Shown piece by piece: positions 1 to 64,000 of a stretch of 64,000 nucleotides of DNA (position 1 is the first letter of the stretch; each line of letters begins with the position of its first letter). The notes beneath the pieces are model-generated. The model saw nothing but the letters and a program-made list of their open reading frames with translations. It searched no databases and had not been told where the DNA came from. The stretch is from NCBI GenBank assembly GCA_965655095.1, contig OZ296657.1, positions 20,770,001-20,834,000 on the forward strand. The letters are read 5' to 3'. Source of the stretch: Haplodiscus bocki (Eukaryota). The translations under genes and the position numbers were made by a program.

Positions 1-2073
1 GCCTCCATTCTTCATAAACGCCAGAGCAAATGGCTTGAGATAAATAAGGGCAGTGACTTCGCCCACATGGCTGCTTTTGCCAGGCATCGCGTTACTGAAA
101 AAACACTGGCATTCGGGAACGCTCTAAAAAAGAAAGTGACAGTAATTTACCTGAACTTGTTCGAAGCATTCAAAAGTGTAAAGATAATTGCATAATTATT
201 GAGGCGCTGGAAGAATGTAACTGTCCTCTGTGGATAATCGAGCTGATGAAGTCAAGGTATGCGGGATGCAAGACAACGCCAGTGAGTGTTGAAGAACTCG
301 CAGGACCAGCACCAGTCACCCGCGGTGTCGAGCAGGGTTGCTCATTGAGCGGACTTTTGTTCAATCTTAATGCGGACACGCTACTCAATGAAGCAACGTC
401 AATTAAATCAGTACATCTAGGATATCTGGACGATTCGGCCATCATCATGCAAGACAAAAAGGAAGTGCAAGAAATTATCAGCAGGACATTAGAATTAGCA
501 GAATCCTGGTTTTTCTTTCAATGCAAAAAAAGCGTGGAGTAGCAAAAGTGAGCTCTATGACTTTGGACATTGACGGAACATCCATCCCTGTGGTCCAAGA
601 CGATAGAGCATACAAGTACCTTGGTATAGAAGCGTTCCCCTCGACAATCCAAGGACTGGATTCGTGTTTCGACAAAACTTTCCTCATGGCTGAACTAATT
701 GAATTCTCAGAGTTGACCCCAATGCAAAAGCTGCATGCACTGCGAACAAAGATTTACCCAATGCTGTTCCACTTGCTTCAGAACTCTAACAGCACAATGA
801 CCCAACTGGAGAAGATGAATCGACAATTTCGGAGAATGGCCAAATGACTACTGTTCCTACCCGAAAGGGCTGCCACGGCATACTTGCATCTTCATCGCAT
901 GTATGGGCATCCCGGTCTGCCAGATCTAGTTCTCGCTAAAAGCAAGATGACTCTCCAAACTTTCATCCGAAGCCTCAATACAACAGAACCATTTGGCGAA
1001 TACCTGAAGCGCGTGTTACTCGACGACAAACATTGCAAGAAACTATAGACGCAATCAACAGTGGTAACGTGAGAGGGTATGGTGACACAATCAAGGAAAC
1101 AGCCAGAGGCTTACGAAGACTAGCAAAGTACCTGGACACAGATGTCGAACTGACCATGCTGGAGGACAATGTCACGCTTTCTATTGAAGACGCCAAGTAC
1201 CGAGACCCTTGGCCTGTTCTTACTCGATACCTCCAGAAGCAGAGTTTAAAAGAAAGACAACGGGCGCCGAATCAAGGACGATTGTGGAGGACTTTGGCCG
1301 AAACACCGCAAACAACTACAGCAGTCTTCAACTTTCACACAACACTCTGTGACTTTAGATTCATCCACCGTGCAAGGCTAAATCTATTCCCTGTAAAATC
1401 AAACTTGGTGCGGAATCAACCTCCTGAAAATCAGAACTGCCGTCGATGCCAAGCTGACTGTGAGACCCTAAATCATACTGCAGCGTGATGAGAAAGAAAA
1501 TCATTGAACGGCACAACTACGTCCGAGACCTTCGAGCCGCCCAGTTTCCTCATCGGCTAAGAATTGTGAAGGAGCAACGTTTTGGAAACATGCAACCAGA
1601 CATCAATGTGCAGGACGAACAGACCAAAGAAGCTGCCATCATCGACATCAAAGTATCTGCTGAATCTAAAGAAACTTTCCAATGGAATGCTCAGCAGATG
1701 GAAGTGAAATATGAGAACTTGAAACGAGCCTATGAAGTCAGTGGATTTTCAACCTCAATCACCACAATCCAGCTGGGTACGCTGGGCAGTTTTTCGAGAT
1801 CCTCAAATCCTGTGCTCCAGAAGTTCATCCGCAACAAGAAGGACATCACAACGTTTATTCGCAAAGCCGCAAGTCTTGTCATCCGCCAATCCCGAAACAT
1901 CTCCACAGAACATCTGACAGGAATTCCCCAAACCTATTAATCAAACTTTTTTTCCGACAAAACCTCAAACCCATTTTTCTCGACATTTACTTTGTAAATG
2001 TATGATTAAACCAGTGTTTTAAGGAAAAATTAGCTCATAAATTTTGTTTTATTCATGCTAATTCAAATGTTTC
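1..2073 (+). mobile_element. Utopia-like (R2/NeSL-type RLE) non-LTR retrotransposon, 3' half, frameshifted
   Basis: RT motifs GVEQGCSLS, GYLDD, YKYLG, LTPMQKLHALR; RLE motifs RARLNL, CRRC..ETLNH, RHN, QPDI..IIDIKV..KYE; 3' end abuts U2 nt 38 at 2074. Confidence 0.9.
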
Positions 2074-2223
2074 ATCTGTTCTCGTCAGCTGAATATCTGG
2101 CATGGTAGGCACCGCCTACCTCCAATATTTAACTGATTTTTGATCCACGGTCTAGGCAAAAAAGCTTGCTTTAGCCGGCCCCGGATTGTCCCGGTCTTAC
2201 ACTCCCACCGGATACGGTCCAAT
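2074..2223 (+). ncRNA. U2: U2 snRNA, 3' part (nt ~38-187), disrupted
   Basis: ATCTGTTCT start, stem IIa GTCAG..CTGGC, stem IIb GGTAGGC-ACC-GCCTACC, Sm site ATTTTTG, stem III with GCTTGC, stem IV CCGGT..ACCGG; colinear with canonical U2. Confidence 0.92.
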
Positions 2224-3123
2224 CGACCATCTTGAACTCAATACCTCCTCAACTGGACCTGAACAGTGATCGTTGCAGTTGAAATATTGAGTGTGTTGAG
2301 TGATGCTATGCATTTTTGTTGAATCGCTTGATGAAGTTCGTCTTTGGGTTTTCGTAATTGCAGTATAGCTGAAGTTTTTGTTTCTCATCTTTTTCTTCCA
2401 GTATCACCCATATGTTAGGTTATTCGACTCAACCATAAGTCTTTTCAGGCTTGAAGACTCCTGTTCGGGAATAAGAAGTGTGCATTAGTCAAAGGTTGCA
2501 TACGTTATCTTTTGGGACGTTTGGTTTTACGGTATTTTCTTTTGCAACTGCAAAACTTTGTTTTTCAAAGTTTTGCTTCACGGGTGCTTGGTTTTGTACC
2601 AATTTAAATCCCATAACTTGTGAATTAGGCCTCTTACGTAATGTTACGGAGAATTGGACATCCTTTTTTGACTTGCCCTTGACGTAGACAAAAAGAGTTT
2701 TTCCAGGTTCCTACAGTTTTCATACGCAGCTCTGTCAGACCAATTTGGCAATTTAGCACGTTTGGGTGTACGTAAACTCCAAAAGTTTCTTACGGAACCA
2801 TTTTGGCATGTGAATTGTTCATTTTGAGATCATTAACGGTTGTCTACTAGCAAAATCATTTTACATGCACTTTCGATGACAACCTGTTTGATAACATAAT
2901 TTTGAAGGTCAAAAGTTGGCGTTTCAGTTTCAGTGTCATGATGTTTGGCAACAACTACCACAAATTGTGCTTACAAAAAAGGCGAAGACGTTGGATCGTT
3001 GTCTTGTCATGTTGTAAGAAGTCAAGGTCATAGCTGGGGTAGCTGAGATTGTGCGAATTTGAAAAACTGCACGATGGAAGTTACATTTGTGATTTATATG
3101 TGGAGATAGAATATTTTTGATTT
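2224..3123 (+). repeat. U2 array intergenic spacer, complete (~0.9 kb; unit ~1087 bp)
   Basis: Links one U2 3' end to the next U2 +1; homologous copies at 17823-18631, 20556-20860, 23905-24449, 52780-53332, 58593-59144, 63437-63625. Confidence 0.88.
3064..3112 (+). promoter_or_regulatory. putative U2 proximal promoter (PSE-type region, about -60 to -12)
   Basis: AACTGCA..A.GGAAGTTACATTTGTGATTTATATGTGGAGATAGAAT lies at a fixed distance upstream of the native U2 +1 sites (3124, 18632, 53333, 59145; diverged before 24450); the position matches snRNA PSE/PSEB. Confidence 0.6.
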
Positions 3124-3142
3124 ATCGCTTCTCGGCCTTTTG
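3124..3142 (+). ncRNA. U2: U2 snRNA 5' end (nt 1-19); nt 6-19 form the left TSD of the Tx1 insertion
   Basis: ATCGCTTCTCGGCCTTTTG is the canonical U2 5' end. Confidence 0.9.
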
Positions 3143-3363
3143 TAGTGAACAGTTACTTCCAGGCCTAACAATTTGCTCATTGGCATTTCAACTCTGCATA
3201 TTTGCTTTTCAATTCTGCTTATTGGCTTTTATTATTGCAATGGTTGAAGATACTTCCTAGTCGATCTTATACTGATCCTAATTAACACATCTCAGCTTAC
3301 TTTGCCAAGTGATCTTATATTATCTCATCTCAGCTTACTTCGCAAAGTGACTTCTGTCCAGCG

Positions 3364-4647
3364 GTGCCCCCCTCCCCGCCTCAGCTGGTGTCAGTCCCCA
3401 AACTGGATCAGGATGCCCTAAACAACCCGAGTAGGCACAATCAAGAACAATCTACAAGTAATGATATTCATGTTGAACCTATTTTGAGCACTCCAGAAAA
3501 AAACAGATACGAAAATGCGTTAAAAACAATGCCTTTGCCCGAAAGCAGAGAAGAAGTACAGGTTCTCAAGATTCCTGTATCTCTTCGCGCTGCAGACTTT
3601 CAGTCGAGAGAAGGTTTAGATCTGGCTTTCAGAAAAGGGTGTTCTGCGATTTTGAAGCAGGCACCGATTTTTTGCCAAAATGAACTGACTTTGTAGAAAA
3701 CTTTTACTGCATTAGGAGGAAGGAACATCCATACAATAACTGTTGTTGCATCATCCAGTGCAAGACCCTATTTTGATGAAGTTAGAACAGGCATTAAGCT
3801 TCTCGGTAAAACAGTTTTCCCTTTGGGGCATAGTGCATTTATAAGTAGCAATCGGCATAATATGTATCCACGAAAAGTGAACATCAAGATTCAGAACCTC
3901 CCTTTAAGCTGCTCGGACGATGAATCAATGAAGTTAATTAGTTTTCCCCCTGAAATTGAAAATATAGATGCCACTGATCGAAGAAAAGAAAATGTTGAAG
4001 GTGTAGATTTCTACACCAGAGAAGCGAAAGTCAAAGTCGGTGTGCGCAATCAGAAACAGTTGAAAAACCTTTCTCGGTGGTCATATCACAAGAGAACCAA
4101 AAATGAACCAACCCTTCGGAACGGAATACCTGTGTCTTTTCACGCTCCCTCGTTGCATAAGTGCGAAGAGTGCAAGAAACAAACTAGGCAATTTCAGGGC
4201 CACCACAAAGACTGGTGCTTCCTGGCGAGGCGAGAAAGTTTGCAAATGGTAGCCAAAAAGACATCAACGATAAAAACTACTTCGACGCCACACCAAACTC
4301 AAATTCAAGCGGTAGAATCGCTAGAAGAATCGCAAGATATATCGCAAGATGAATCGCAAGATAGATCGCAAGATCATAACGAATCGCAAAATGAATCCCA
4401 AGAGGAATCACAACAGGAGTCGCAAGACGAGTCTCAAATTGAAGATGAATTGAAAACTTTGGCGGAAGGAAGTTTAATGACTGCTCATGCAGACAAAAAC
4501 ATAAGAAAAAATGAGATGACAAATGTTAAGAAACAAAAGTATGTAAGGCTTGAGGAACGGTGTAGACAGGCTGCAAAGAAAGAAAACGATGAAGAAGACA
4601 CACACCGTTTACCGTTGACTAACTTCCCACCATTGTCCAAAAAGTAG
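3364..4647 (+). pseudogene. Tx1-type ORF1 (RRM-like region, CCHC zinc knuckle, ESQD repeats), one stop
   Basis: KVNIKIQNLP RRM-like start, CEECKKQTRQFQGHHKDWC knuckle; the same region is uninterrupted in the copy at 21055-21750. Confidence 0.78.
4315..4440 (+). repeat. 12-bp coding minisatellite GAATCGCAAGAT (ESQD/ESQN)
   Basis: About 10 degenerate units; related array at ~11540-11670. Confidence 0.8.
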
Positions 4648-4780
4648 TGAAAGGAATAGAATACTTAACAAGCAAAGAAAAAGAACGAGTCACCTCGCCG
4701 GGAAGCGCTGTAGGAAATGCCAAAACGAAGGCGGCCAAAGCGGGAGGATCCCCCAACAAAGTGAAACCACAGAATTTGAC

Positions 4781-6990
4781 TTGTTAAGTTTGAATGTACG
4801 AGGAAAAACTTCAATTGACTGTTTCGTGGCAACCCTAGACATTATATATAGGAGACAATTCTCTCAAAACATTGTAATTCAAATGCAAGAGACTAAGCTG
4901 AATAAGCTTTCTCAAGACAATATTGACGAAATTAATTTACGGGGACTTTCGTACATTGATATACCTGCAACGGACTCAGCGGGGGATTGCTCACGTTTTG
5001 GTCCAAAAACATGATAGTTCGTCAAATTTTCACAGAAAACAAAATTATCGACATCCTGCTTCTCGACCGCGGGACTCTAATAATAGTTAAATATATGAAC
5101 CAGAAAGTTTTTGGTGAGGAGGAGTCAGTTCTCGGAAACTTTTTGAAAAATAAAAAGGCAGAAGAGACTGACATCATTCTTTCAGGAGACTCAGGCGTAT
5201 GAAAAAACCGATATCTGAAATTGAAGTAACTTTGCCCATAAGAAGTCTCAATAAAAAATCTGCACCTGGTCCTAATGGATTGACCACTCTCTTGTACCAA
5301 GGGCTTGAACAAACGCGGGCTCCAATTTTGAAACAAACTTCAATGAGGTTGAGCGGAAAAGCCAGTTGCCTGAATCCTTTGGTTTCGCAATCATCCAAGT
5401 TTTGCCCAAACAAGAAAGCGCTATTCGAGTAAAAGACTACAGCCAGTGAGTTTATTTATTACTGATCAAAAAATCCTTTCACACGTTTTTGACAATAGAT
5501 TGAAAGAAGGCCTAGATTTTAGTAAAGCTTTTGACAATGTACACAGAAATTATCTTTACAATTTACTTCAGGTGATTGGAACTCCAACAAACATTGTCAA
5601 ATGTTTCAAACCGATCGATGAAAAGACAACTGCAGTTGTTCAAGTCAATCATCATATGACACAATCAGTTGAAATTAAGCGGGGAGTCAGGCAGGGATGC
5701 CCTCTCTCAGCACTATTATTCATTCTAGCCATTGAACCAATGCTGCTTGACATTAAAAACGACCCTTATATACACACCAAGTTCGTCACCAACGTTTCAG
5801 CCTATGCTGATGATATAACTTGTTGCGTTAAAAATAGATCTTTAGAAGCACTATTTGACCGAGTAAAGTGTTCTTGCGATGCCACTCAACTATCTGTTAA
5901 AGTTGATAAAACAAAAATTCTGAGCAGAAGAAGCATGCAATATTATGAAACTCGAAAGAAAATCAAAATACTCGGTATTGAACATAAACTGAATGATCAG
6001 GCAAATAACGACCTGTTTCAGGATAAAATCTCAGAAGTTCAAAACTCGGTTGCAGCGATACCCAAAACGATAATTTCAATGCGGGCAGAAGCAATAAATT
6101 TCGAAACTTTCATTTACTCCAAGTTGATTTACGTGTTACGCCACACAAAAGTGGTAACACAGCGACTCGAAAGATTCCAAAGGTATATAACAAAAGGTAT
6201 ATGGATGGAGAAGAGAACAGACGTGGCTTCAGACATTCTTTGTCTCCCCACACCCAGCGGCGGAATTGGTCTCCCAAATATTGACCTGAAAACTTTTGCA
6301 GCCGTCATTAGTGACTGCGAAAATACATTCTTCCACTCAAATCTAGGAAAAGAAATTCTGCTGAATCAACTCTTCGGATCTGAGGAAGGGTTTCTCCATG
6401 ACCTTAAGAAATCTCTTTTGAAAAGTTTAAAATGCAAATTGATATTTATGGAGAACAAATTCTGTTAGTGGGTGACGGGAGACAATTGCAAATTGTGGAG
6501 CGTACGAAAATGAGAGATATATTTTTTTCCTCTAATTACGGAAAAAAAACGAAACGTAGAAAATCGCCTGGTTCCATCTTGCAGGATTTTCGACGTTTCT
6601 ACGCAACAACTTCTATCTTTTAAGTTCCTATGGAAGGTAACATCACTTTATCCACATGAAGAAAATCTAATGTATCGATTTCTCTACGCTTCTTGCTCAG
6701 ACAAGCCAAAAAAGAAGCAATTAAATTCAATTATGGATGACAGTTGCACTTTTTGAAAAATCCGGCAAGAAACGATAGAACATGTACTTTTCGATTGCCC
6801 AATTTTGGAAATACTCCAAAAAGAGTACAAACTAAAAAGTTGGAAAGAGAGACAGTTTTGTTGAGAAAAATTCCAAGTCAATAAAGTTTGCAACTGACGT
6901 TTTGATTGGAGCGTGGGAAAATGAAGGTGAAAAAACGATGGACTATCTTAATAGAACAATTTCCATATGGAGCCCGGCCGAACATTGGAT
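4781..6990 (+). pseudogene. Tx1/L1 ORF2 (AP endonuclease, RT, CCHC), deleted and frameshifted
   Basis: LSLNVRG, MQETK, SGD; SAPGPNGL, LDFSKAFD, RGVRQGCPLS, AYADD, GGIGLP. Confidence 0.9.
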
Positions 6991-7212
6991 GAAATCCCCC
7001 CCCCCCCCCCCCCAAAATAGATTGGGTTCGGTACAAGAGAAAGATGGAAGATGGAGAGGAGGTAAATAAGTAGGAAAATGGCATTTCTGGACAGTTCAAC
7101 CCACGTCCTTTTTAATAACATATTTAATATGAATTTATTACCGATTAGAATTTTATGCAACCAAGTAGACCAAACATCAAATGTGTAACAAAGCAATGCC
7201 GGACGGTGCGGT

Positions 7213-7273
7213 GGTCCCCGTATCCGCCGTCTTGCGTCGAATGTTGCCTTCTCCGCGGTTGGAGACGGGGACC
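7213..7273 (+). other. GC-rich hairpin in the Tx1 3' UTR
   Basis: GGTCCCCGTATCCGCC pairs with GG(T)TGGA(T/G)ACGGGGACC; a 16-bp stem with one G-U in the copies at 23122-23182 and 41575-41635. Confidence 0.75.
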
Positions 7274-7408
7274 CTAAAAATTTCGGGATCCGGGCCATGT
7301 AATGGGTGAGAATAAGATATAATGTAACTAATTTGAAGTAGTGTAACTAATGGTGCTTCTTTTCTCTTTTTAAAAAACAATGGAACCCGGGACCAAGTCG
7401 ATGATACG

Positions 7409-7698
7409 CAGGGGCTGATGCACAAACTGAGGTCTTGGGGACAAGCCAGCAACTGCAAATTCAAGGTTCTGTGGCTAAGATGGTCAGTGACTGGCAATTC
7501 CAGTCGAGCATTTGAGAATGAGGACTCAGTTGAAATTCCATATCTGGCCTCAAACCCTTGTCAAAGTTCAAACGCAGTTGCTGGGATTCAAACCTCTACC
7601 TTGACATCAGCGCCTCATGCTACAACCACTATACCATCATTGCACAAAACGTGAGGAAATCTGAATGTATATCCGAATAGCGTATGCATCAGCCCCTG
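7409..7698 (-). mobile_element. inverted-repeat-flanked cassette containing an antisense tRNA-derived SINE-like unit, inside the Tx1 3' UTR
   Basis: CAGGGGCTGATGCA (7409-7422) and TGCATCAGCCCCTG (7685-7698); minus-strand A box TGGTATAGTGG and B box GGTTTGAATCC within 7573-7643. Confidence 0.72.
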
Positions 7699-7796
7699 AC
7701 AAAAACTTTGCTTAGTATAAATATGGGTGCTTACATTTATGTTTATCGAACACAGTTAACAAATTATGAGAAATAAGGTAATTTAAATATTTGAAT

Positions 7797-7825
7797 TTCT
7801 CGGACTTTTGGCTAAGATCATGTGT
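7797..7825 (+). ncRNA. U2: U2 nt 6-34 fragment between a Tx1 3' end and a Utopia 5' end
   Basis: TTCTCGGACTTTTGGCTAAGATCATGTGT. Confidence 0.88.
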
Positions 7826-10800
7826 GCAATTTCAGAGTCGTGGCGACGTGTGGCCATGATGCTGATGATTTCGAGTTCGATCCCTACCGGAGGCGACTTT
7901 TTTTAATAATTGAATCAAAGACAGCGAATTCTATATTACCGACATTTTCTTCCCCAAAAATGTCGTCATTTATATTTGATGGATGTGCAGCAATAGTGCC
8001 GTTTCCAGTATCCTTCCCGCTGCTTTGCGCAGCTTGTGACCGCTCAATAAAAGAATCGACTTTCAAACGCGATATCTTTCGACACTCAAAGATCTGCAGG
8101 CAAAGACAACCGGGATTACCAGAAGCGGACGAACTGGTTTTCGAATGTTCCTTCTAAAATTTCACAACCACCGATCGAAGGAAAACAACTTCCCACTAAG
8201 TCTCGCATTTTGGAGACAAAGACTACAACCTGGTAAAATATCCGTGTGGGAGATGCAATCGTTTCTTTGCCACTCAGAAGGCTCTGAGCAGCCACACCCG
8301 GCAATGCAAAGAAGTAGTAGATAAGGCTGGACAGAGTCCAGCAGTTCATCCTTTGCCATGCATTGATCCAGGTCCGAGTGCTCACGATCCAGTAGGTGAG
8401 GAAGTACAATACCATGACCATGCGGTTGAACAAGCACAGACGGTAGAGGCGCAGCCTATTGCAGACAACGACGAAGACCAGAGTGAGATAACATTTGTGT
8501 CAGTGTCGTCTGTTTCCCTGGCTCCTGACGAAGATTTTTATAGACCGCCTGCCTGAGTTGACCCCAATTTTTACTGTGACCTTTCGCTGCAGAAGTTGAT
8601 ACCACCAAAAACTGCAAAGAAAATCAGGCAATCAAAACAGAACTTTCTCTCCTCGAAAATGTCGCCTCGTGACCTGCAAGCCCTCTACATAAAACAACCA
8701 AAGAAAGCCATAGACAATATACAATTTATTCCAAGCATTGACTGTAAAGTCAGGAGTGTAGACCTGCGCCATGGGCTGTTGCTGCAACTTGAAATCCAGA
8801 ATCCGCCATCCCTAAAAGAACAGTTATGGAGACCCTGTCTAGAAGGGATTGAAGAAGAACTAACAATGCCGTTTCAGGTAGAAGAAATCCAAAAAGCACT
8901 TTCCCACCCAAACTCAGCGCCCGGTCCCGATGGGTGGAAATATGAGGACCTTGCTCGTCAAACAGACTTTTCCAAACACTTCGTGGAGGGATTACACCAA
9001 ATCGCTGCCACCTCAAAAACGCCCAATTCTTGGAGGGCATACAACTCAATGATGCTGTTTAAAAAACCTGATGAATTTGTGCCAGGACAAGAGTCCGTTT
9101 TGAAAAACTTTCGCCCTATCGGACACCACGTACAAACTATTAACATCAACACTATGCAAGCGATTAAGCAAATGGTTAGAGAAGAACAAGGGAATCTCTT
9201 ACTCCCAACGAGCAGTGTTTTCACGTCGCGGGGTCCAAGAAAATACCTTATTTGTTGCTGAAGCACTGAAGCAGAAGAAGAGTACTTTTCCTAGACTTAT
9301 CTGATGCGTTCAACAGCGTAGAACATTGCCACATATACGAAGCCCTAAAACAAAGTTCTTGTCCGGAGTGGATCATCAAGCTGCTAAAATCGCTGTACAG
9401 CGGATGCACCACAGTCCCTGTGGATCAAGCTGGCTACCCACTGTCTGGACCAATCCCTGTAACGAGAGGAGTACGCCAAGGATGCCCCCTGAGTGGTCTC
9501 CTGTTTAACCTGGTTTTAGACCCGATAATCCGAAAAGTCTAAAATTCCTCAACTACATGTTCGGGTTATATGGATGATCTGGCGGTGGTTACGGACCCTT
9601 CCACGCTCCCTGGAATCCTAGAAGAGATAGTAGAACTTGCCTCTCTCCTGGGTATTCGTTTCAATCCACAGAAAAGTGGAGTCGCCAACTACGCCCCAAC
9701 ATTAAGGATAGCAGATAAAGATATCAGAGTAGTCAACGAAATGCAACCTTTGGGCACCGAAGCAATTCCCTCGAATCTCGGTGGATTGGAAACCCACTTC
9801 GCAAAGATCTACAAGTCAGCAGAACTGATCGAAATGTCCGCCCTCACACCGATGCAAAAACTACATGCTTTACGCACTTATGTCCTGCCCATGTTGATGC
9901 ATCTGTTGGAAAACTCACATTCAACTCAAAAGCAGCTCCAGAAGATAACAGAGACCTAAGGAAGACGGTGAAGCGAATATTTTATTTACCGGAAAGAGCC
10001 ACAAACACATACTTTCACCTTCACTGGAAGTACGGAGGCCCGGGGCAGCCGAATTTAGAGCTACTGAAAGTTAAACTCACTATCCAAACTTTCACACGAT
10101 CAATGAATCTGCCAGATGAGTTCGGCGACACTACGCAAACCCTCATTACCAAAGGAAAACCAATGTCAAGAAACAATTGGGAAGATCAACAATAGATCAA
10201 GAGCTGGACTGTCCCAACTAACCAATGACGTGGTGTTTGCCACAAAGAAGTTGGAGTCCTTCCTGAGGGTGCAATTGTCCTTTAACCATCATGACAACTG
10301 TGTAAGCTTGGTATTAAACAACATGTGTTACAAAGATCCTGGACCAACTATTGAAAGTTTAATTCAAAAGAAAACACTACAAAGTCTTATTAATACTCCC
10401 AGCCAAGGACCCGCATGGTCCTCGCTTAACCAAACTCCGAGTACCACCAAGCAAATCTACAGTTTTCATACCACAATGTGTGTCTGGCGCTTCGTTCATG
10501 CAGCAAGACTGAGCCTCACTTGAATTCGAGCCAACGTCGTTTGGAACCACCACAACGACCCAAGGTTTAGACGTTGCCAGGTTGCTCGTGAAACAGTAAA
10601 TCATGTTGTCAACTCGTGCTCCACTAACAGACGAGACATTATACTGCGCTACAATGCTGTAAGAGATCTGTTCGCCACTGAAGTACCCGGGACGCTGAAA
10701 GTTGCTTATGAACAAAGATTTGGCTATCTTTGACCAGACCTTGTCCTAGAAGACCCATCAACGAATTCAACCGTTATTCTACATGTCAAGGTTTCTGCTG

Positions 10801-11494
10801 AAGATATCCACATCTTCAATGATACCTCCCGATTCATAGCTGACAAATATGAACCCCTGAGGCGTTCCTATGAAATTTATGGCCACAGAGCTTCAACACA
10901 CACCCTCCAGTTTGATGCCCTTGGCAGTGTTTCTCGCGACAGCTACAACCTCATCAACCGAATCACGAACAAAAAGAATGCATAACTTGTTCTGAGGAAA
11001 ATAACCAACCTAATCACACACTGTACCCGCAACCTCACAGGGCAACATCAACTATCCTGAACTAAAAGCTGATGACGCGCTCTCTGCCAAATCCACGATT
11101 GTGCTAATAATCAATTTTTATGCCATTGTTTCATTATGCCTATTGTTTTACAATGTCAATCTATCTATTCATTTACGCAACTCGCATTCTCCAAAGGTCC
11201 ATATTATTCTTCAACATGTACCCGCCTCATTCCCACAACGAAGCCCCTGTAGCCAAGCAGCGTCATCTTTGGAACGCTCGACCTCCTGCTGGTGTTGGAC
11301 CAGATGGGCTTGGATGGAGGTGGCCCACCAGACTTATAACTGACTACAAACTTGACTTAAACTCCGTAAACATTCACCTAACCTTTACACTGCTTGTATA
11401 AACTTAGCTCTCACATTCTGTATACTAATTTTTCATCATTGTCTCAAGCAACAATTGCGCGTGTATTTTCCATTTCCTTCTAACTAAAATATTT
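7826..11494 (+). mobile_element. Utopia-like RLE element, near full length and degenerate (ORF ~7960-11070)
   Basis: N-terminal zinc fingers (CAAC..RHSKIC, FECSF, YPCGRC..ALSSHTRQC), SAPGPDGW, FRPI, GYMDD, LTPMQKLHALR, AARL, RLE region; U2 fragments on both sides. Confidence 0.9.
11281..11330 (+). other. conserved pseudoknot-type RNA element in the Utopia 3' UTR
   Basis: Crossing stems ACCTCC/GGAGGT and GATGGGC/GCCCA(T/C)C; homologs at 13500-13548 and 20205-20254. Confidence 0.62.
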
Positions 11495-31700: not shown

Positions 31701-31709
31701 CAAACTCGC

Positions 31710-51831: not shown

Positions 51832-51832
51832 G

Positions 51833-52779: not shown

Positions 52780-53354
52780 ACTGTGTAAAATTATCCGAAA
52801 ACTTCAACAAGTCCAAACAAAGGTTGTGCTTTATTCACAGATTGCATGTGTTGTTTCATGCGACCTTTGTTTTTTTAAGGTATTTGGGCAAATGCAGAAG
52901 TTTGTCTTTAATAGTTTTTGTCTACGGATCCTTTGTTTAACGTCCATTTCAAGCCAAAGACTTGTGAAATAGTTTTTTGACATAACGTTTCCGAGATCTC
53001 GACATCCTTTTTTCAGGCAAGCGAAACGCTCATTTTGAGACCAGTAGGTTTCTACAAGCGAATTCATTATAAACGCACCTTCGAATTTATCTTGTTTAAT
53101 AACATAATTTTGAAGATCAAAGTTTGCGTTTCAGTTTCAGTGTCATGATGCTTGTTAACAAATACCACAATTTGAGTTAAAACTGAATGCAGTGACGTTG
53201 GATTTTTGTCTTGCCATGTTGTAAGAAGTCAAGGTCATGGCTGGGGTGGCTGACATTGTCCGAAGTTGAAAAACTGCATCACGGAAGTTACATTTGTGAT
53301 TTATATGTGGAGATAGAATTCTTTTTTGTTTCATCCTTTCTCGGTCTTTTGGCT
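52780..53354 (+). repeat. U2 spacer/promoter plus U2 nt 1-22 (53333-53354)
   Basis: Spacer homology; ATCCTTTCTCGGTCTTTTGGCT; duplicate at 58593-59166. Confidence 0.85.
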
Positions 53355-53720
53355 GTCTCGGTTACACGGATGAGTTGGCTGTTGTGAATGATGTCTCAAC
53401 TCTGCCATTGGTTTTGGAAGAGATAGTCTCGCTTGCTACCCTTCTCGGACTGTCCTACAATCCGAAGAAATGCGGTGTCGCTAATTACTCACCGAGTCTC
53501 ATGATTAACGGAGAAAAAATACCAATAGTAGATGATACCCATGCTTACAAATATTTGGGTACCAAAGCAATTTCCTCCAAGCTGGGTGGACTGGAAGCTA
53601 CTTTCGACAAGACATGGAAAATGGCCGATTTCGTTGAAATGTCGTCTCTAACACCAATGCAAAAACTCCATGCTCTTCGAACATACATTCTACCCAAACT
53701 GATGCACCTCCTTGAAAATA
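53355..53720 (+). mobile_element. Utopia-like RT fragment (duplicate at 59167-59532)
   Basis: CLGYTDE, YKYLG, LTPMQKLHALRTY. Confidence 0.88.
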
Positions 53721-53780
53721 ACCCCCTTTCTGTAGCATTTTATAGTATCTTTCCGCGGTTGATAAAGTTGACAAAGAAAA

Positions 53781-54626
53781 ATGGAACCGTACAACAGACA
53801 AACGGCCAGTAGTTTCGTCGGAAGGGCCCCTATTTCGGAGACAACTACCTCTGGGGTGATGTATAGCCAGGCCCCCGAAGAAGCTCGAATGGCCAACATG
53901 CCGGCTACCGCGGGGATATTACCTCTGACAATAAGAGCAGGGAACCCCCAGAGCACATATCGCCTGAACAAGATCGAAACACCCCGTCCCAACACGGAGT
54001 ATGTGTATTTTCATTTGGAAAAATATTGTACACTAGACGCATTGTGGTCCCCGCAATGGTTAAAGTTGAGTATCTACTGTGCAATGACGAGGGAAATTTT
54101 AATGGCTGTCATCAACGCAGCAATGGAACGACCGGAACGAACCCATTTCCTTCTTACTCTCACCCGAGTCCTGGCTCTACCGGATTTGGCCCCGCGTGCA
54201 GAAGGAAATCCACTTAGTACGCGGTTTCATTGGAAAACACCCATGCACGAGGTTATGTGGTCTTGACTGCAAACAGGAGAATCGCCATGGGATTTTCCTT
54301 ATCAGATGTATCCCCAGCCACCGGCCCGACCCCGAGTGGACATCGCGACTTTCCAACGGGCGATGTTTACACATTTGCTACCATCGACATCCGCGACACC
54401 GGCGGCGACGACTGCTACCCCCACCCCGTCGACTGCAACAAGCGCGGAAACGGCAATTCAGGAGCTGGGAGTTAACGTTGACGTAGAAAAAGACACCGAT
54501 AGCGTGGATACAACTGCCGCAGTGATTTTCACTCCCCCGAGGGTAGTCAAGAAAGATATTAAACGACCAGTACCGATATCTCCTCCTGGAACGAAGAAGA
54601 ACCAGCCCGGTACCTCGGCATTGTAA
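53781..54626 (+). pseudogene. ~280-codon ORF of unknown function upstream of the PPT, one internal TGA
   Basis: ORFs 53781-54266 and 54306-54626 are in the same frame; P/T-rich C-terminus; 5' part duplicated at 59593-59858. Confidence 0.55.
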
Positions 54627-54921
54627 GGTAGAAGAAGAGAAGATACATAACAGGGCGGAAAGTTTTGGTTCGGTAATGTTAATAAACTTTCTAATTTTGA
54701 CACCGTTGTACTGAAGCTAAGAAGTGCATTTTAGTAACCGTTAATTGTAATTGTTGTTCAAAGGTACTTCAGTGTACATTATATATCTATTATTCGTGAC
54801 AGGAAGTTATTAAAGATGTGATTGATACAATGCACTTTGACCAAACAGTCATTAAAAAATTGACAAAACAGAAAAGAACACGAAAAATTCAATAAACCGA
54901 CTACTCAGGAGAGTAGTAGTC

Positions 54922-54942
54922 GAAGTGGGGCGGGGGGGGGAA
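54922..54942 (+). promoter_or_regulatory. polypurine tract
   Basis: GAAGTGGGGCGGGGGGGGGAA immediately before the TG of LTR copy 2. Confidence 0.85.
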
Positions 54943-57900
54943 TGTGAGATTTCTGCCATAGTTTTTTTTTCTATAAATGTTTATTAAATTTTCATTGTCA
55001 TCTAAAATTAGTTAAATTGAAAGGTACTCGATAAGATATAAGATATACAAATGATTAATGGTGAAATGAGAGCCAAGGAGAACGCTCTACGCGAGTAAAC
55101 AGCACTGCAGCAAAAGTTGGTCTAATTCGAACCCCAAATATAACGTCCATTTTCTCGAAGACTATTATAGATAGAGCAAAACGGTTTTCACCAATGAAAA
55201 CTACATTCCAAGACGAACAAGTTGGGTGATTTTCACCGCATTCTGAAAATTAAAAGTTGTCGAAAAATTAAAACGAAAAATATTACGGTCCGGAAAATGG
55301 TAAAATCGTGATTTCACAGTTCAGTTGCAACTTTAGAAGCGTATAAAAATGAAAGCGGAGTGGACACAAATTGTTATAAATACAATAGGAATACAATAGG
55401 AGTGATTTTGGAATGAATTTTGACCACGCGCACGGCCGCCACCACCCCACGTTTTTGCATATTTACGCTCTCGCTGATCAAAAATAGACCTGTTTTTTTA
55501 ATGCTCCCCAATGTTTGCTTGCTTATTTCTCGAAGATGAGAAAAGATATCGACAAACGGTTTTCACCATTGTAAACTACATCTATGTGAGAGCTTAAGTT
55601 TGGAATATGACCAAAATCGGACGAATTTAAGATATTGAAAAATCGTAGTAACCGAAAAGTGTACCCCCGAAATTGCCAAAATGAGTTTAGTTAAAAATTT
55701 ATTCTGAGCGAACCACGCATCAGAAAAGGCTCGTATTAGTCTTAAACGGAAGATATTTGAATGGACTAATGTCCCTGAAAAAATGAATCGATTATATTCA
55801 GTCATTTTGGAGAACTGAGTAAGAAATCGCCAAAAAACGCCCAAAATAGCCTAAAATCGTCAAAAATCGCAGTTTTTCGCCTACCATATTATTAGCGATC
55901 GAAAGCTTATTATTAGGAGGAATAGAAAATAACAATAGAACAAGCTTAGCCAGCTACAAATGGCCGCCCCACAAAATTGCAACTAGCTAAATTCACGGAT
56001 TTTGGAAAATGTCGACTTGCAAAACGGCTAGCGGTCCACCCCGCACCTTTTTGAAGATAGAAAGCTCAAAATTTAACACAATGTTCCTAACAACCTCCCC
56101 CAGGAAACTGACCGAGGATTTTTCGAAATTTTGCCTGTACGTTGAGAAAATCGACTCTGAAGGTGGACCCAGGTAGTCAAAAATGGCCAAAATCGGTACT
56201 TTTGCGGAAAATTGAATAACTTTTTTTTGAGACCAGCTAGAGAGCTCATCTTTTCGTTAAAATACTCTTACTTGAATGTACTAACAGGAAAATACCACCC
56301 CCGCCCTGGGAAAAATTTATACGTTGAGAAAAATGACCTCAAATGTGACCAAAAATCGATTTTTCGGATATGGAATTTTGACTACTTTCAGGAAATCGCA
56401 TTTTTCGACCATCAATATTGAAAATAACTATAACAAAGTATACATTGCCAGAAACTACATCAAACACCGCGTGTAATAATGTGCTCATTTCATTTTTATG
56501 ACGTTTATGATAGGCACAATTAATTATTGAATTCTACTCAAAAATTACGCCTTTTTTTGGACATTTCTTTTTGCATGGATATTATGACGGGAATGGTTAG
56601 GGAAGATATGTTAACCACTTATTTTGGAAGTACTTGGTCACGCGCGACGAGTAGAATAGCTGACACATCAACCGAAAGAGCATGTCAATCAAAATGGTGA
56701 CATAAACGAATTGAAACGAAGAGGAATTTTCTTAATCATTTTTAACACCCCCGTTTTGCCAGTGGATACGACCAAAATCAATTAATCATAACTGATGTAA
56801 GCGAAGAAAATAGACACCGAGTAGTACCAAAACTGATGATTACTGTACCGAAGTGAAATAAACGATATAACCAACGAAAATTGATAGTCATTTTATGAAT
56901 TATTGGACACGAATAACCGGATGACTGACAGTAATGCCGAAAGTAATTGAATGGTACCGAAAGCCAGAAAAGTGGCTAAAAACGGAACTTTCAATTAGTA
57001 ATAGATGACGAATAGAACAGAAAGTGATAATATTGGAAACGAGTTAAACGAATGACTAAGATGTAACACTAGATGAAAATACGCCCGAAGACGAACGAAA
57101 AAGTGAAGTGCTAGGCACACAAAGGGGGTTGAAATCTGGAGAACGGTTTGCTACTTTGCTGTCAACGGATAGAGTACGAGTCTTTGAGTCCGGGACTAAA
57201 GATTGCAGATTTACTTTATCAACCCTTGTTAGAGGGTCTGGGACTTTTTGACTCCAGATTGTGAGATTGTGATCCAGGATCATCGTCTGTTGTCGTGACT
57301 GAATTGGGAAGTTGGACTTCGCCAGATTCTTTTGAGATGTTCTTCTTTAACGCCGTGAGACGCGGGTTAGAGAGTAATTTGGGCCCCAGCGGTGGCTGAA
57401 CCGTGGATTAGTTAGAGATAGCAGTCCGGGACTGTTTCGCATCACTCCAAGAACGTTGGAGAAAGGCGGCAAGTTATTGAAATACAACTTTATTTTCTCA
57501 ATCATTTGCTGGTTGAGTACCTTTCAATTCTTCCTTCGGGAAATCTTCTTGTTGTTTTAACCCCGTTTGATCTGATTTGTTTATTGGTTCTGTGAACAAT
57601 ATATTACTCAAAGTATTATCCATTATTTAATCGATATCCAGTAATAAAAGTATTATTCTGTGAAAGATATTATTTAGCATGATTGTATTATTCTATTACT
57701 TTGTGTCATTTAATTAACTTTGAGATAGTTTCTCATGAGAGAAAATTTTATTTAACAGACAAGAGCTACGAGACACCCTTTAAAAGAAGAATCAAGACAG
57801 AACCGCGTTTCTTAGCGCATCTTACCCCCACCGCCTCCGAATTATTAGACTTGTCTTTTCTTTCGGAGTTATAAATTTTTTGTGGATGCTCCGCCGATCC

Positions 57901-58030
57901 CCCGTCTCGTGCATCTGGTACACGCGCTTAATGGAGTAGTAGTGGAGCATTTTAAAAACAGAGTAGAAAAACTCCTCAGTGATTCGATTCCTCTTTGGCG
58001 GTTGTTAAAGCTACTTTTCAAAATTCTACA
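54943..58030 (+). mobile_element. long terminal repeat, copy 2 (3088 bp), with PPT before and PBS after
   Basis: Same termini as copy 1; few substitutions and a ~29-bp indel. Confidence 0.85.
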
Positions 58031-60146
58031 GTGGCGCTCCTGGGTGGGCTGTCCCTGTTTTGAATTCATCTTCAAACCTTCATTTTATTTTTTTTAAATC
58101 CCAGTTGCTTCCATTTAATTATTTCACCTCACTGGTTATTTGCCGGCGAAGAATGTCGATGACAGCACCCCGCAGTAGCAGCAGGTGGAACCGGAGAAAA
58201 GTCCAATCAAGGGTACCTGGATGCCTCTGGGGGAATAAGTTGTTCTCGTAACCGTGAGAAAAACCTGTTTTAATAACTTTGATTCTTTTATAATCACTCT
58301 CCCACCTGTATTTATTTGCCCCCATGAAAGATTTACTTTAACTTTTGAGTGATTTACTTTAATTTTCTCCCTTAGTGATCAATTCCCGTGAAGGAAATTC
58401 TAAAGTCTTTCCCCACTTGGACAAATAAAAAAATTATATAAGTTAGGGAAATGCAAATGTTAACCAGGGAAAACCCTGGAAATGATGAGTAAGGACGTAG
58501 TTGATAATTTCTCAGTCACTGCTCAATTCATTCCGTCCTAAAAATTGTTGCTAGTCAGTTGATTGCTCGATCGAACAAAAAAAAACGATCGAACTGTGTA
58601 AAATTATCCGAAAACTTCAACAAGTCCAAACAAAGGTTGTGCTTTATTCACAGATTGCATGTGTTGTTTCATGCGACCTTTGTTTTTTTAAGGTATTTGG
58701 GCAAATGCAGAAGTTTGTCTTTAATAGTTTTTGTCTACGGATCCTTTGTTTAACGTCCATTCAAGCCAAAGACTTGTGAAATAGTTTTTTGACATAACGT
58801 TTCCGAGATCTCGACATCCTTTTTTCAGGCAAGCGAAACGCTCATTTTGAGACCAGTAGGTTTCTACAAGCGAATTCATTATAAACGCACCTTCGAATTT
58901 ATCTTGTTTAATAACATAATTTTGAAGATCAAAGTTTGCGTTTCAGTTTCAGTGTCATGATGCTTGTTAACAAATACCACAATTTGAGTTAAAACTGAAT
59001 GCAGTGACGTTGGATTTTTGTCTTGCCATGTTGTAAGAAGTCAAGGTCATGGCTGGGGTGGCTGACATTGTCCGAAGTTGAAAAACTGCATCACGGAAGT
59101 TACATTTGTGATTTATATGTGGAGATAGAATTCTTTTTTGTTTCATCCTTTCTCGGTCTTTTGGCTGTCTCGGTTACACGGATGAGTTGGCTGTTGTGAA
59201 TGATGTCTCAACTCTGCCATTGGTTTTGGAAGAGATAGTCTCGCTTGCTACCCTTCTCGGACTGTCCTACAATCCGAAGAAATGCGGTGTCGCTAATTAC
59301 TCACCGAGTCTCATGATTAACGGAGAAAAAATACCAATAGTAGATGATACCCATGCTTACAAATATTTGGGTACCAAAGCAATTTCCTCCAAGCTGGGTG
59401 GACTGGAAGCTACTTTCGACAAGACATGGAAAATGGCCGATTTCGTTGAAATGTCGTCTCTAACACCAATGCAAAAACTCCATGCTCTTCGAACATACAT
59501 TCTACCCAAACTGATGCACCTCCTTGAAAATAACCCCCTTTCCGTAGCATTTTATAGTATCTTTCCGCGGTTGATAAAGTTGACAAAGAAAAATGGAACC
59601 GTACAACAGACAAACGGCCAGTAGTTTCGTCGGAAGGGCCCCTATTTCGGAGACAACTACCTCTGGGGTGATGTATAGCCAGGCCCCCGAAGAAGCTCGA
59701 ATGGCCAACATGCCGGCTACCGCGGGGATACTACCTTCGACAATAAGAGCAGGGAACCCCCAGAGCACATATCGCCTGAACAAGATCGAAACACCCCGTC
59801 CCAACACGGAGTATGTGTATTTTCATTTGGAAAAATATTGTACACTAGACGCATTGTGGTACCAGCCCCGGAGCTCCAGACTTTCCCACCAGACGACACA
59901 ACGTTATTAATAAATTAGTTAACGACATCCATCCGGCAGTTTCACCAATAACCATGCTCAAACTACGACAGAAGCCGCAGAATCAACACCCCTGGACATC
60001 TCTCTCTTCTGGGCCCGTGATTAGGAGCGCGGCTGGGGAAGCACTAGACGGGGGAGGCTGCCCAACCGCATAACAGCAAGTAAATCACCAGTCGAACGAA
60101 TGGTCTGGAAAAACTTACGGTAATTATTAAATAAACACCCCGTGAC

Positions 60147-60296: not shown

Positions 60297-63282
60297 CCTC
60301 ACTCCAGTTCGGGCCAACGCCGTTAGTATGGCCGCAAAGGCCCGAAGTAGCCATACTCGCCAATGTCATGGCAGCGTAGCCAACCCAACCACCAACACTC
60401 TACCTTTTGTACCCACATTCAACACGGACACTTTCCAGGCGCCACGCTCAGTTGATGCAGATGTAGCCACACCTTCAGCTTCCCCCACCCGACAACGTAA
60501 CGTCGACCATGTACGGTGCGACAATCAATACTCGCCAATATCAACGGCCAACCTCCCCAGTTCGACTGCTGACGATTATCCAATGACTGTTTAAGACCCA
60601 ACTCCTGATGTGAATGAAGTCATTGCTGCCCCAATTCTGACGAAACCCGCGCCAGCAAAACAGGACGGTCTGAAGTCCTTGTTCCGTCTAACTCCTACAA
60701 AAACTTCACAGCTCTAACCCCAAACGCGCGCTAGACAAAATACAGATGTTGCCAACGATCAACTGCGAAGTTGACCCTGTGGACCTCCGTTACGAGCTGC
60801 TTCAACAACTCGAGTCAAAAGGCACACAGGTCCCGCACAAAGTACTCTGGTCCAGATGCAGAGATGATGTGGAAGTACTCTCCGCACCCTTTACTGACGC
60901 TGAAGTCAAGGAAGCCCTGAAGCACCCGGATAAGGCGCCCGGACCTGATTGCTGAAAGTACAGAGAGCTAGCACAGATGGACGACTTCGTGCCAAAATTC
61001 ACAGAGCTCCAGCACTTGATTACTAGCAGAGGAGAAATACCAAACTGCTGGAGGGTGTACAACACAATGCTCCGGTTCAAGAAGCCAGAAGAATATGGAC
61101 CTGAGAAAGAGAAAGTATTAAAGAACTTTCGCCTGATCGCCTTGTCGAACGTGGCATACAAGACCATGGCAGCTAATTTGTGTCGAAGGCTGGGAAAATG
61201 GTTGGAACAGAATAAGGGGAATAGAAAAGGTATTCACAGAGGTCAGTGTTTTCAAGAAGAGGTGTCCAAGAAAACACCCTCTCAGTAGCAGAGGCTTTAC
61301 GTGCCAAGAAGCCTGTTGTATACCTTGACCTCAGCGACGCCTTCAACACTGTAGAATATCCGTTGATACACGCAGCCCTCCAACAGTCATGATGCCCAGG
61401 ATGGATACTGGAGATCGTGCAGTCAGTGTACATCAACTGCATCACAACCCCTGTGGATCTGTCTGGGAAGCCTCTCGACGGTCCTGTTCCTGTATCATGC
61501 GGTGTACGACAAGGCTGCCCCCTGAGCAGTCTGATTTTCAGCCTGGTACTAGATCTGGTGCTCCAAGCAGCCTCGGGGGCCAGGAACAATCTGTCTCGGG
61601 TATATGGACGACATCGCCATTATTTTCGACAACCCTGATGACGTCACAAACACCCTTGACCGCACAGTCAAAGCTGCACAGTCACTTGGTTTCTTTTTCA
61701 ATATATCCAAGTGTGGAATCACTAACTACAAGGGTGCTGTCGCAATCAACAACACAGCGCTACCACGTGTCACCGATGATGATAGAGCGTACAAATACTT
61801 TGGAACGGAAACCTCCACCAGCACCGTTGGCGGACAAGATATTTGTTTACAGAAGACATGGGAACTGGCGGAGAAGACTGAAACATCAGATCTTACGCCT
61901 ATGCAGAAACTCCATGCTGTACGAACCAACGTCTTGCCAATGATGTACCACCTGGTCGAAAACTCATACACAACACAAGACAGACTGTACGGCATCAACA
62001 GAAGACTCAGGAAGCTGACCAAACGGCTGTGCTGCCTTCCGGAAAGAGCAGCAAATGCCTACATTCAATTAGACTGAATGTATGGGGGACCGGGCATTCC
62101 AGATTTTGTTGTATGAAAGCGAGATTGACTTTGCAAACCTTCATCCCAGCAATCAATCTGGGCGATGAATTCGGTGAAAAAGTGCGTACCCTAATCCAGA
62201 AGAATCTCAGCTCGTCCGAATTGATACAGAAGATCAACAGCGGCTCCAAGTCTGGTCTGTCACTACTTGGAAAAGAAGTGAGCATGGCGATAACACGAAT
62301 TGAAAAGTACCTGGGCTGTGACTTGAGACTTGACTTACACGAATCAGAAAGCTTTGTCTTGTACATTAACAACATGATGTACAAAGACCCAAACCCTACC
62401 CTAAATCTGCTGATACGAAAACAAGGCCTGAAAAACCTATGTAATGCCACGAATCAAGGACGCTTCTGGAAATCGCTAAGCAAAAAAACTATAGCTACCA
62501 AACTGGTCTACAGTTTCCACACAAAGATGTGCGACTAGAGACATGCACATTCAGCAAGACTAAATCTGACCTCACTGAAAGGAAGCTTCAATTGGAGTAC
62601 TAGACGTAACGAGGCATGCAGATGTCAGACAGGACGAGAAATTTTAAATCATGTACTGAATAACTGCCCTGTTCAGAGACGTGACATAATTCAACGGCAT
62701 AACAACATCAGGGACACTCTTATACACAAGCTTCCAAAAGACCCCAAAATTTTTCGAGAGGAACGTTTTGGCAACCTCCAAGCAGACATGATTGTGGAAG
62801 ATTCCATGAAGAATGAAGCATACATACTGGACGTCAAAATCTCATCTGAAGACACCAACCTTTTCGCGGAGAATGAGCATCGGATGAAAGAGAAATACGA
62901 GCCCCTACGACGAGCATATGAACTCAGAGGCACAAGGGCGACAACGTCAACAATACAGCTTGGCTGCCTCGGTTCCATATCAAGGTCCACAAGCGAAACA
63001 CTTCTGAGACTTCTCGGGAACAGAAGAGAAACCAGACGCCTTATGGTCCAGCTTTCCTGTCAGGCCTCGCATGCAGCTCGTAACCTGATGGTTCACTTTC
63101 TCAGTGGTCAAAAACAAAACATGTGAAGCTAATGAAGACAGAACTCAACAGTTCTCCTCAAACTCAAATTTAACCGTATTCCCGTGTTTCTTTCTAATCA
63201 ATTTATTCTTCTACTTCCACCAATATATTGAATTGACAATTCCACGTATAATTTATCTTATTTATGCCAATTTAAACACTTC
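60297..63282 (+). mobile_element. 5'-truncated Utopia-like element flanked by both U2 halves
   Basis: SSHTRQC, APGPD, YLDLSDAF, GVRQGCPLS, YMDD, LTPMQKLH, ARLNL, RHN, ILDVKI..KYEPLRRAY. Confidence 0.9.
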
Positions 63283-63436
63283 ATCTGTTCTTGTCAGCTT
63301 AAAATCTGGCACGGTGGGCACCGCCTACCTCCAATAATAAACTGATTTTTGATCCACGGTCTAGGCAAAAACGCTTGCTTCAGCCGGACCACGGACTGTC
63401 CTGGTCTTACACTCCCACCAGGTACGGTCCTCCAAT
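63283..63436 (+). ncRNA. U2: U2 snRNA 3' part; spacer follows to ~63625
   Basis: Same structure as the other copies. Confidence 0.9.
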
Positions 63437-64000
63437 CGATAATTTCGAACTCATTATCTTCTCAACTGGATCTGACTAGTGATGCTTGAAGATTCGATAT
63501 TGACCTTGGTGAGTGAATGCTTTGCCTTTTTTGTTGAATCGTTTGATGAAGTTCGTTTTTGCGTTTTCGTCTTTGCAGTATAGCTGAATTTTTTGTTTTT
63601 CATCTTCTTCCAGTGCCGCCCATATGTGTCAGGTTACCTACCTCCTCCAACCTATTACCAGGAGTTTCATATTGTTGACACGAGTGTCTGTCTACTGGAG
63701 TAACTTGTCATCCGACAACAACAGCGCAGTCACAGAATATCTCTCGCAGAACAATAGCTGCAGCGGGGACCGATTTAACCCTAAGTGGTCCAGGGGTACG
63801 AAAACGTACCGAAAGTCAATTCAAGCTGCAGCGGAAGTCACGTGACTTGTAATTCTTTCGGATCCAGGAGCTTTTAACCAATCAAATTTGAGAATGAAAG
63901 AACGAAAGCGGAATGTTGTTTTGACCGCTGATGGTACTCGCTTACAAAATCAATATTACAAAATGCAAGATGCGCCTTGAGTTATGCGCAGCAAAACTGC

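Follow-up and report, generated by a model that had tools for sequence, protein, structure and literature searches.

Introduction

Utopia elements are retrotransposons that lack long terminal repeats (non-LTR); they belong to the NeSL clade, encode a restriction-like endonuclease (RLE) and insert into U2 small nuclear RNA (snRNA) genes (Kojima and Jurka, 2015; PMC4640811). They comprise one to three N-terminal zinc fingers, a reverse transcriptase (RT), a further zinc finger and the RLE; the U2 sequence downstream of an insertion starts at about nucleotide (nt) 38/39, the 3' junction is precise and the 5' junction variable, and several lineages can share one U2 array (PMC4640811). In 2015 the only other elements known to insert into U2 were those of Keno, at one site shared with Utopia (PMC4640811); Keno belongs to the Tx1 clade, encodes an apurinic/apyrimidinic endonuclease (APE) and targets U2 according to Kojima and Fujiwara (2004), as cited in PMC4640811 and PMC4494074. 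Here we describe a stretch of 64,000 nucleotides of Haplodiscus bocki DNA (positions 20770001-20834000 of contig OZ296657.1, here C10, of a 1.5-Gb genome assembly), hereafter the window, which lies in a decayed array of a variant U2 gene. We propose, as by far the most probable account, that this array has been saturated by two unrelated site-specific non-LTR lineages, each at its own U2 nucleotide, namely Utopia-like elements at nt 37|38 and a long interspersed nuclear element (LINE) with an APE, which we call Family A, at nt 5|6, and that a third LINE landed once at the Sm site of U2.

An earlier reading of the same DNA, made from its letters and called here the original prediction, had proposed that three retrotransposon clades divide the U2 gene between them, each with its own site, as in ribosomal DNA (rDNA). 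It had also placed Utopia and Keno at a common site at about nt 38, in agreement with PMC4640811.

A variant U2 array without an intact gene

As a reference we took the unit of a two-unit mini-array at C10:13.307 Mb, which is 1065 bp long (190 bp of U2 and 875 bp of spacer), mapped the window against it by blastn and then read the element junctions directly. The array of the variant gene is degenerate and spans roughly 220 kb, of which the window is a part, with units of 1065-1090 bp. Units inside the window are ~1087 bp long, and blastn recovers 16 unit fragments, none of which holds an intact U2 gene and which end at a few recurring U2 positions; the predicted repeat of ~1.09 kb without an intact copy is therefore confirmed. 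Rfam gives five above-threshold U2 matches, all on the + strand, and in all five the first ~37 positions are misaligned to foreign sequence, which is the 3' tail of an element. A scan of the whole window at a permissive threshold added two more U2 fragments and nothing besides U2, with no HDV-like or other ribozyme at the element 5' ends. Every retroelement coding match in the window is on the + strand, that is, in the sense orientation of U2, as had been predicted for all insertions.

The genome census found two intact U2 genes (C5:44649671 and C10:44863130, 175 bits each) and at least 20 U2 copies that begin at nt 37-39. All units sampled from the variant array carried an insertion. The array variant differs from the intact type in, among other things, a compensatory change of a stem pair (GCTAGGC/GCCTAGC as against GGTAGGC/GCCTACC), and it was therefore once under structural constraint.

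Turnover at the DNA level is also evident in the array: positions 48724-54054 of the window are duplicated at 54943-59866 (97-99% identity), positions 43455-43854 are 100% identical to sequence 36 kb away at C10:20850073, and deletions join several elements to spacer positions. Words of the U2 spacer are present in independent public runs too, coral metagenome runs among them.

Beyond the window, about 365 kb downstream, satellites of ~35-bp units, each corresponding to U2 nt 1-32, occupy at least 3.1 kb (C10:21197546-21200687), and the same satellites occur at C10:21134786-21138034 and C10:21315218-21315494; their unit corresponds exactly to what remains of U2 upstream of a Utopia 5' junction. 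The mini-array that supplied the reference unit (C10:13298000-13310231, - strand) stops at U2 nt 121 against an open reading frame (ORF) resembling the integrase of a long-terminal-repeat (LTR) retrotransposon, with a YYWPGM motif, and a Utopia-like copy with an uninterrupted frame of 1059 amino acids (aa) lies upstream of it.

Utopia-like elements at nt 37|38

The 3' junctions at 2074, 11495, 13714, 20405, 34674 and 63283, which the original prediction had assigned to one site, were read directly and all six fall at U2 nt 37|38. The 5' junctions are ragged: in the window they fall at nt 22, 28, 29, 31, 31, 34 and 37, and those at other loci fall at nt 29-32. An RLE-type protein match directly precedes 18 of the U2 copies, at least 20 in number, whose start is at nt 37-39, and Utopia-like protein matches lie nearly all in U2 loci (C10 at 20.75-20.98, 13.31, 45.13 and 45.43 Mb, C279 and C2945), with three outliers.

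The elements at this site have N-terminal zinc fingers, an RT and then a CCHC motif and a PD-D/E-K nuclease, the RLE. Translations of three copies show the CCHC followed by RHN..PD..D..K..KY motifs downstream of the RT, and an uninterrupted C-terminal half of 466 aa, from the copy at C10:13.31 Mb, matches the nuclease end of solved R2 proteins (E 1.8e-13). At the other end, two C2H2/C2HC fingers can be read in the translations of 44798-45631 and 14017-14769 and one in that of 8200-8553, the Pfam zf-C2H2 match being below threshold. These features support the assignment of the nt 37|38 elements as Utopia-like, a clade given by architecture and insertion site rather than by a tree with named references. 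A protein search for relatives returned unnamed matches and one spider protein, and the supplements of the Utopia paper (PMC4640811) hold none of the 3' tails found here, nor the U2 variant.

Several deeply diverged lineages are involved, with protein matches that span 35-100% identity, and uninterrupted frames, of 1059 and 1063 aa, are present in two copies that share 45% identity. Two insertions, at C10:45126546-45129120 (-) and C10:45430244-45432187 (+), lie in U2 copies with 100% identity to the intact type and are therefore young.

Family A at nt 5|6

Family A elements are 5.6-5.9 kb long and have an ORF1 and an ORF2 of ~1046 aa with APE, RT and a C-terminal zinc finger. Their 3' junctions fall at U2 nt 5|6 at four positions in the window (7797, 15729, 43855 and 60271) and a 5' junction falls at nt 19|20 (3142/3143), which together with the nt 5|6 side gives a 14-bp target-site duplication (TSD), TTCTCGGCCTTTTG. 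Outside the window the junction of U2 nt 1-19 with TAGTGAACAGTT recurs at C10:20949043, and the copy on contig C279 has its 5' junction at nt 18 and there continues into another 5' sequence, so that the 5' junctions total three, all at nt 18-19. Further 3' junctions at nt 5|6 or 6|7 are found at C10:20914183, C10:20975415, C279, C2945 and C10:45373864, which with those of the window makes at least eight places. The nt 6-19 site of the original prediction is thus borne out within the window and beyond it.

The window ORFs of Family A match RVT_1 and, weakly, Exo_endo_phos_2. The nearest database protein, P0121 (1046 aa, 70-87% identical), has precomputed APE, RT and zf-RVT domains, the close relatives P0121 to P0123 carry PF14529 (APE), and by tblastn residues 73-310 of P0121 map onto window positions 38451-39158. 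P0121 matches residues 139-884 of human L1 ORF2p with an E of 4e-64, as against 1e-20 to 1e-25 for R2 proteins, and Family A is therefore an L1-group APE LINE. On a tree that includes a few named proteins, Family A and unnamed invertebrate relatives form a clade of their own outside the Danio protein BAC82621.1 and the vertebrate L1 groups, labels being unverified and the rooting arbitrary. BAC82621.1 is presumably from a survey of the Tx1 family. The class first predicted, 'Tx1/L1 APE type', stands as to the L1 group, with Tx1 as a possible placement.

Family A is small: we counted 16 copies at 82% identity or more in the RT region, six of them in U2. Among 14 complete 3' ends, six are again in U2 and eight have flanks without detectable U2 similarity; seven of these eight nevertheless open on the first bases of the U2 target, TTC in all seven, TTCT in five and TTCTCG in one. 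That the eight flanks are degenerate U2 was ruled out by local alignment against shuffled controls. A LINE has been taken as target-specific when more than 20% of its flanks are of one sequence type (PMC4494074), and Family A lies above that share both by copies (6/16) and by complete 3' ends (6/14).

A tree of the 3' 1.4-1.7 kb places the U2-resident copies in four lineages that are interleaved with dispersed copies. Between the U2-resident lineages the ratio of nonsynonymous to synonymous divergence (dN/dS) is 0.32-0.44, at a dS of 0.2-0.8 (tblastx with Nei-Gojobori), whereas neutral simulation through the same pipeline gave 0.73-1.12. The interleaving and the low dN/dS together imply that these Family A lineages were active while they diverged, and that each came into U2 on its own, at one and the same nucleotide. 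The U2 specificity of Family A is a strong preference, leaky and not exclusive.

The first 216 nt of the Family A 5' untranslated region (UTR), window positions 3143-3358, are found only in array copies; dispersed full-length copies match from ORF1 onward only and so have a different 5' leader. At the other end, the first ~270 bp of a 3' UTR probe (43455-43700) match many dispersed sequences, some with a tRNA-like box B (GGGATTCGAA), and this segment may be a short interspersed nuclear element (SINE) partner or a shared 3' UTR module.

A 3' tail shared by the two lineages

The 14-mer TAATTYAAATRTTT occurs eight times in the window, where 0.35 occurrences are expected. The seven + strand matches (2059-2072, 7779-7792, 13698-13711, 20390-20403, 23877-23890, 34659-34672 and 43837-43850) are all at 3' termini, of Utopia-like and Family A copies both, and the single - strand match overlaps a Family A terminus (7779-7798). 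The 14-mer or a close variant (at most three mismatches) is carried by all 18 distinct Utopia 3' ends sampled genome-wide, and the Sm-site LINE ends in the loosely similar GAATTCAATATTTC. A more far-reaching reading, which we offer tentatively as possible but somewhat short of an even chance, is that Family A represents a hitherto undescribed lineage of the L1 group, which targets a site of its own at the extreme 5' end of U2 (nt 5|6-19|20) and forms with Utopia a two-site guild like that of R1 and R2, and that the shared 3' motif reflects either exchange of tails or recognition of the template RNA, at its 3' end, by a factor common to both.

The Sm-site element

A 13-bp duplication, of U2 nt 92-104, stands on either side of the third element (34741-36195). 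We scored all 15 genomic matches to its last 400 bp, and U2 follows only the window copy; the other 14 lie on C1, C2, C3, C4, C6, C10 at 72 Mb, C12 and C131, and their flanks are unrelated, many of them opening with ATTTC. By the flank measure applied to Family A the Sm-site family falls below the 20% share, with 1/15 in U2, and a probe from the element body found no other copy in any U2 locus. In PDB searches its RT is about equally far from R2 and L1, and the ESM Atlas gives generic RT names apart from a jockey-like label, which is a lead only. The element is a dispersed LINE that landed in U2 once and is not a U2 specialist. Its tail, CAATATTTCG, resembles the CAATAT just upstream of the duplicated U2 segment, so that microhomology at an A/T-rich spot suffices for such a landing.

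Proposed explanation and alternatives

The anatomy of the array, the junctions, the genome-wide distribution of the elements and the purifying selection are direct observations, and from them we infer a mechanism in which each lineage would use target-primed reverse transcription at its own U2 nucleotide. Several deeply diverged Utopia-like elements would nick U2 at nt 37|38, which leaves the 3' junction precise and the 5' junction ragged, 0-15 nt of the target being lost, and Family A would insert between nt 5|6 and nt 19|20, duplicating 14 bp and often sharing its U2 copy with a Utopia element. The elements may be co-transcribed from the U2 promoter, and the TTC(T) at the 3' flanks of dispersed Family A copies would fit a template RNA whose 3' end carries the target or pairs with it.

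Some observations weigh against this account. Ten of the 16 close Family A copies are dispersed outside U2, the non-U2 flanks have no U2 similarity beyond TTC(T), and for these reasons the specificity of the endonuclease is putative; one copy (20862-23916) lies in the spacer, and the APE of the window copy is only a weak Pfam match (E 0.002). Unequal crossing-over can also multiply copies within an array, and segmental duplications are present in this one. The Utopia/NeSL and Tx1 assignments are made by architecture and insertion site. Finally, a U2 fragment at C10:20857644-20857738 starts at nt 95, near the Sm site; none of our probes matches just before it, and that region was not read.

This fragment, together with the clean insertion at nt 92-104 and its 13-bp TSD, is what can be said for the three-way partition of the original prediction, in which a third clade is a specialist on the Sm site of U2. 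We consider that partition highly improbable: 14 of the 15 3' ends of the family are on other contigs or at other loci with unrelated flanks, the body probe found no further copy in any U2 locus, and the microhomology between CAATATTTCG and CAATAT is enough for a chance landing. The three predicted sites thus reduce to two, nt 5|6-19|20 and nt 37|38, the Sm site having a single insertion and no cluster, and the rDNA-like guild on U2 is retained for two lineages without the third; the evidence supports a two-site guild resembling R1/R2 in rDNA and not a three-site one. A more serious competitor denies Family A any target specificity. According to this explanation one ancient insertion at nt 5/6 was spread by unequal crossing-over and, transcribed from the U2 promoter, seeded random copies that bear TTCT as a tag of U2 read-through. 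It would accommodate the ~60% of Family A copies that are dispersed, nearly all of them TTC(T)-tagged, the DNA-level duplication that does occur in the array, the identical 5' junctions of the window copy and the copy at 20949k, and the restriction of the first 216 nt of the 5' UTR to array copies. It is nevertheless unlikely, since lineages decaying in situ should show a dN/dS of about 1, whereas the U2-resident lineages, at a dS of 0.2-0.8, show 0.32-0.44; since U2-resident and dispersed copies are interleaved on the tree; and since the C279 copy differs both in its 5' junction (nt 18) and in its 5' sequence.

That the whole mosaic was produced by collapsed or mis-joined repeats during assembly could be suspected from blocks of 100% identity 36 kb apart (43455-43854 and C10:20850073) and from the several array pieces on small unplaced contigs (C279, C2945 and C4377). 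We find this scarcely credible, as the same types of junction recur with different sequences on many contigs and both strands, and the spacer words are present in independent public runs. Our preferred reading therefore remains that of two site-specific lineages in a decayed array, with one stray insertion at the Sm site. The original prediction had itself named, as an outcome that would tell against it, a majority of copies outside U2; this is what we find for the Sm-site family (14/15) and, to a lesser degree, for Family A (10/16), yet the U2 copies of the latter sit at one exact nucleotide in at least four selected lineages.

Arrangement of the elements along the window

All parts listed here are on the + strand. 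It opens inside a Utopia-like RLE element (1-2073) that is cut by the window start and runs from the RT through CCHC and RLE to a 3' junction at U2 nt 37|38, as seen from an RVT_1 match, motifs in the translation and tblastx. Then come U2 nt 38-192, a full spacer and nt 1-19 of the next U2 (2074-3142; unit positions 38-1061 by blastn, junctions read) and an internally deleted Family A copy (3143-7796) identified by its junctions and RVT_1, which lacks aa 104-396 of P0121 by tblastn and has U2 nt 1-19 and nt 6-34 on its flanks, giving the 14-bp TSD. A linker of U2 nt 6-34 (7797-7825; blastn and junctions) leads directly into a degenerate Utopia-like element of full-length size, 3.67 kb (7826-11494; joined to U2 nt 34 on its 5' side and with its 3' junction at nt 37|38, and with the C2HC zinc finger of 8200-8553), so that one U2 gene is doubly occupied.

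Positions 11531-13489 hold a 5'-truncated copy of Family A', a diverged lineage of Family A (~73% DNA identity), joined to U2 nt 74 and with a dN/dS of 0.40 against the copy at 39152-41362. It is followed by the 3' end fragment of a Utopia-like element (13490-13713), whose 3' junction at 13714 was placed at U2 nt 37|38 or 38|39, by the 5' part of another (13940-15076), which has two zinc fingers and is joined to spacer position 264 (tblastx and translation), and by a 3' part of Family A' (15077-15728; junction and tblastn) with its 3' junction at U2 nt 5|6 (15729). A Utopia-like copy with its 5' junction at U2 nt 37 (15761-17823) is 3'-deleted within the RT and joined to spacer position 284. 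Another, 5'-truncated to 1.74 kb (18663-20404), lies between U2 nt 31 and nt 38 by its junctions, and its 3' end has only three genomic matches, all inside the array. The internally deleted Family A copy in the spacer (20862-23916) interrupts unit positions 504/512 and is followed by TTCTCGACCTTTTT, which resembles U2 nt 6-19.

The stretch 24478-34673 comprises two Utopia-like copies (~24478-27571 and ~30437-34673; junctions and tblastx), with a 5' junction at U2 nt ~28 and a 3' junction at nt 37|38. The sequence between these tandem copies (27572-30436) is AT-rich, with 31-35% GC, and was assigned to none of the elements; a 92-bp tandem repeat occupies 25638-26008. The Sm-site LINE (34741-36195; RVT_1 match), whose RT is tentatively jockey/CR1-like and whose 13-bp TSD is U2 nt 92-104, stands between U2 nt 38-104 (34674-34740; blastn and junctions) and U2 nt 92-192 with the start of a spacer (36196-36362; Rfam and blastn).

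A Family A copy at 38235-43854 (start approximate) has a nearly complete ORF2 (APE, RT and C-terminal zinc finger) and a 3' junction at U2 nt 5|6; its 3' UTR is rearranged and contains part of a Utopia element (42959-43455). Next is a Utopia-like copy (43879-48723), joined to U2 nt 29 at its 5' end, in which zinc fingers and RT are present and frameshifts are few. The segmental duplication covers 48724-59866, and in each block a 3.3-kb sequence is accompanied by spacer, by U2 nt 1-22 and by a Utopia fragment that is truncated at its 5' end (53355-53722 and 59167-59534). In the duplicated 3.3-kb sequence (48724-52029 and 54943-58226, 97% identity) neither strand holds an ORF of 110 aa or more, and the sequence was assigned to none of the three element families. 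The last element is a Utopia-like copy of 2.99 kb with CCHC and RLE motifs (60297-63282), between U2 nt 31 and nt 38, after which U2 nt 38-192 and spacer follow (63283-63627; Rfam and blastn).

Comparison with known systems

Site-specific LINEs serve as models for retroelement safe harbours and as starting points for programmable insertion tools. If our reading is true, Family A would offer a natural example of specificity that leaks, its U2 copies standing beside tagged off-target ones, in which the encoding of target choice could be studied. It is also plain from the locus that inactivation can extend to every unit of a variant snRNA array, only two intact U2 genes being detected in the 1.5-Gb assembly.

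The Utopia-like part is a further member of the published U2 site. It has the same position, with downstream U2 beginning ATCTGTTCTT at about nt 38/39, the same precise 3' and variable 5' junctions in sense orientation, the same order of N-terminal zinc fingers, RT, CCHC and RLE, and several diverged lineages that coexist in one U2 array, as in Phytophthora. It differs in that every sampled unit of the variant array is occupied and in that the clade is assigned here by architecture and site. The spacer words in coral metagenome runs suggest a coral, or an animal living with corals, as host; the host table of PMC4640811 includes no cnidarian, and the host group may be a new one. Family A, at nt 5|6, occupies a second U2 site, and a search of later papers, confined to one literature collection, found no report of another U2 insertion site. 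Like Keno it is an APE-encoding L1-group LINE at U2 genes in sense orientation, but Keno uses the Utopia site, whereas Family A inserts 32 nt upstream with a 14-bp TSD, stands apart on the tree from the sole candidate Tx1 reference (Danio BAC82621.1, label unverified) and has many off-target copies.

The closest parallel to the pair is that of R1 (APE) and R2 (RLE) in 28S rDNA, where likewise an APE and an RLE lineage each keep to a fixed site, the two sites lying close together in one tandem RNA gene, where a single unit often carries both, and where insertion inactivates the unit. The differences are that the target here is an snRNA gene transcribed by RNA polymerase II, that the sites are ~20-30 nt apart, that no R2-like 5' ribozyme was detected by Rfam in the window and that the APE partner is leaky. 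If an APE site 32 nt upstream is indeed co-occupied with that of Utopia, U2 would be the second RNA gene, after rDNA, to host an APE/RLE guild at two sites.

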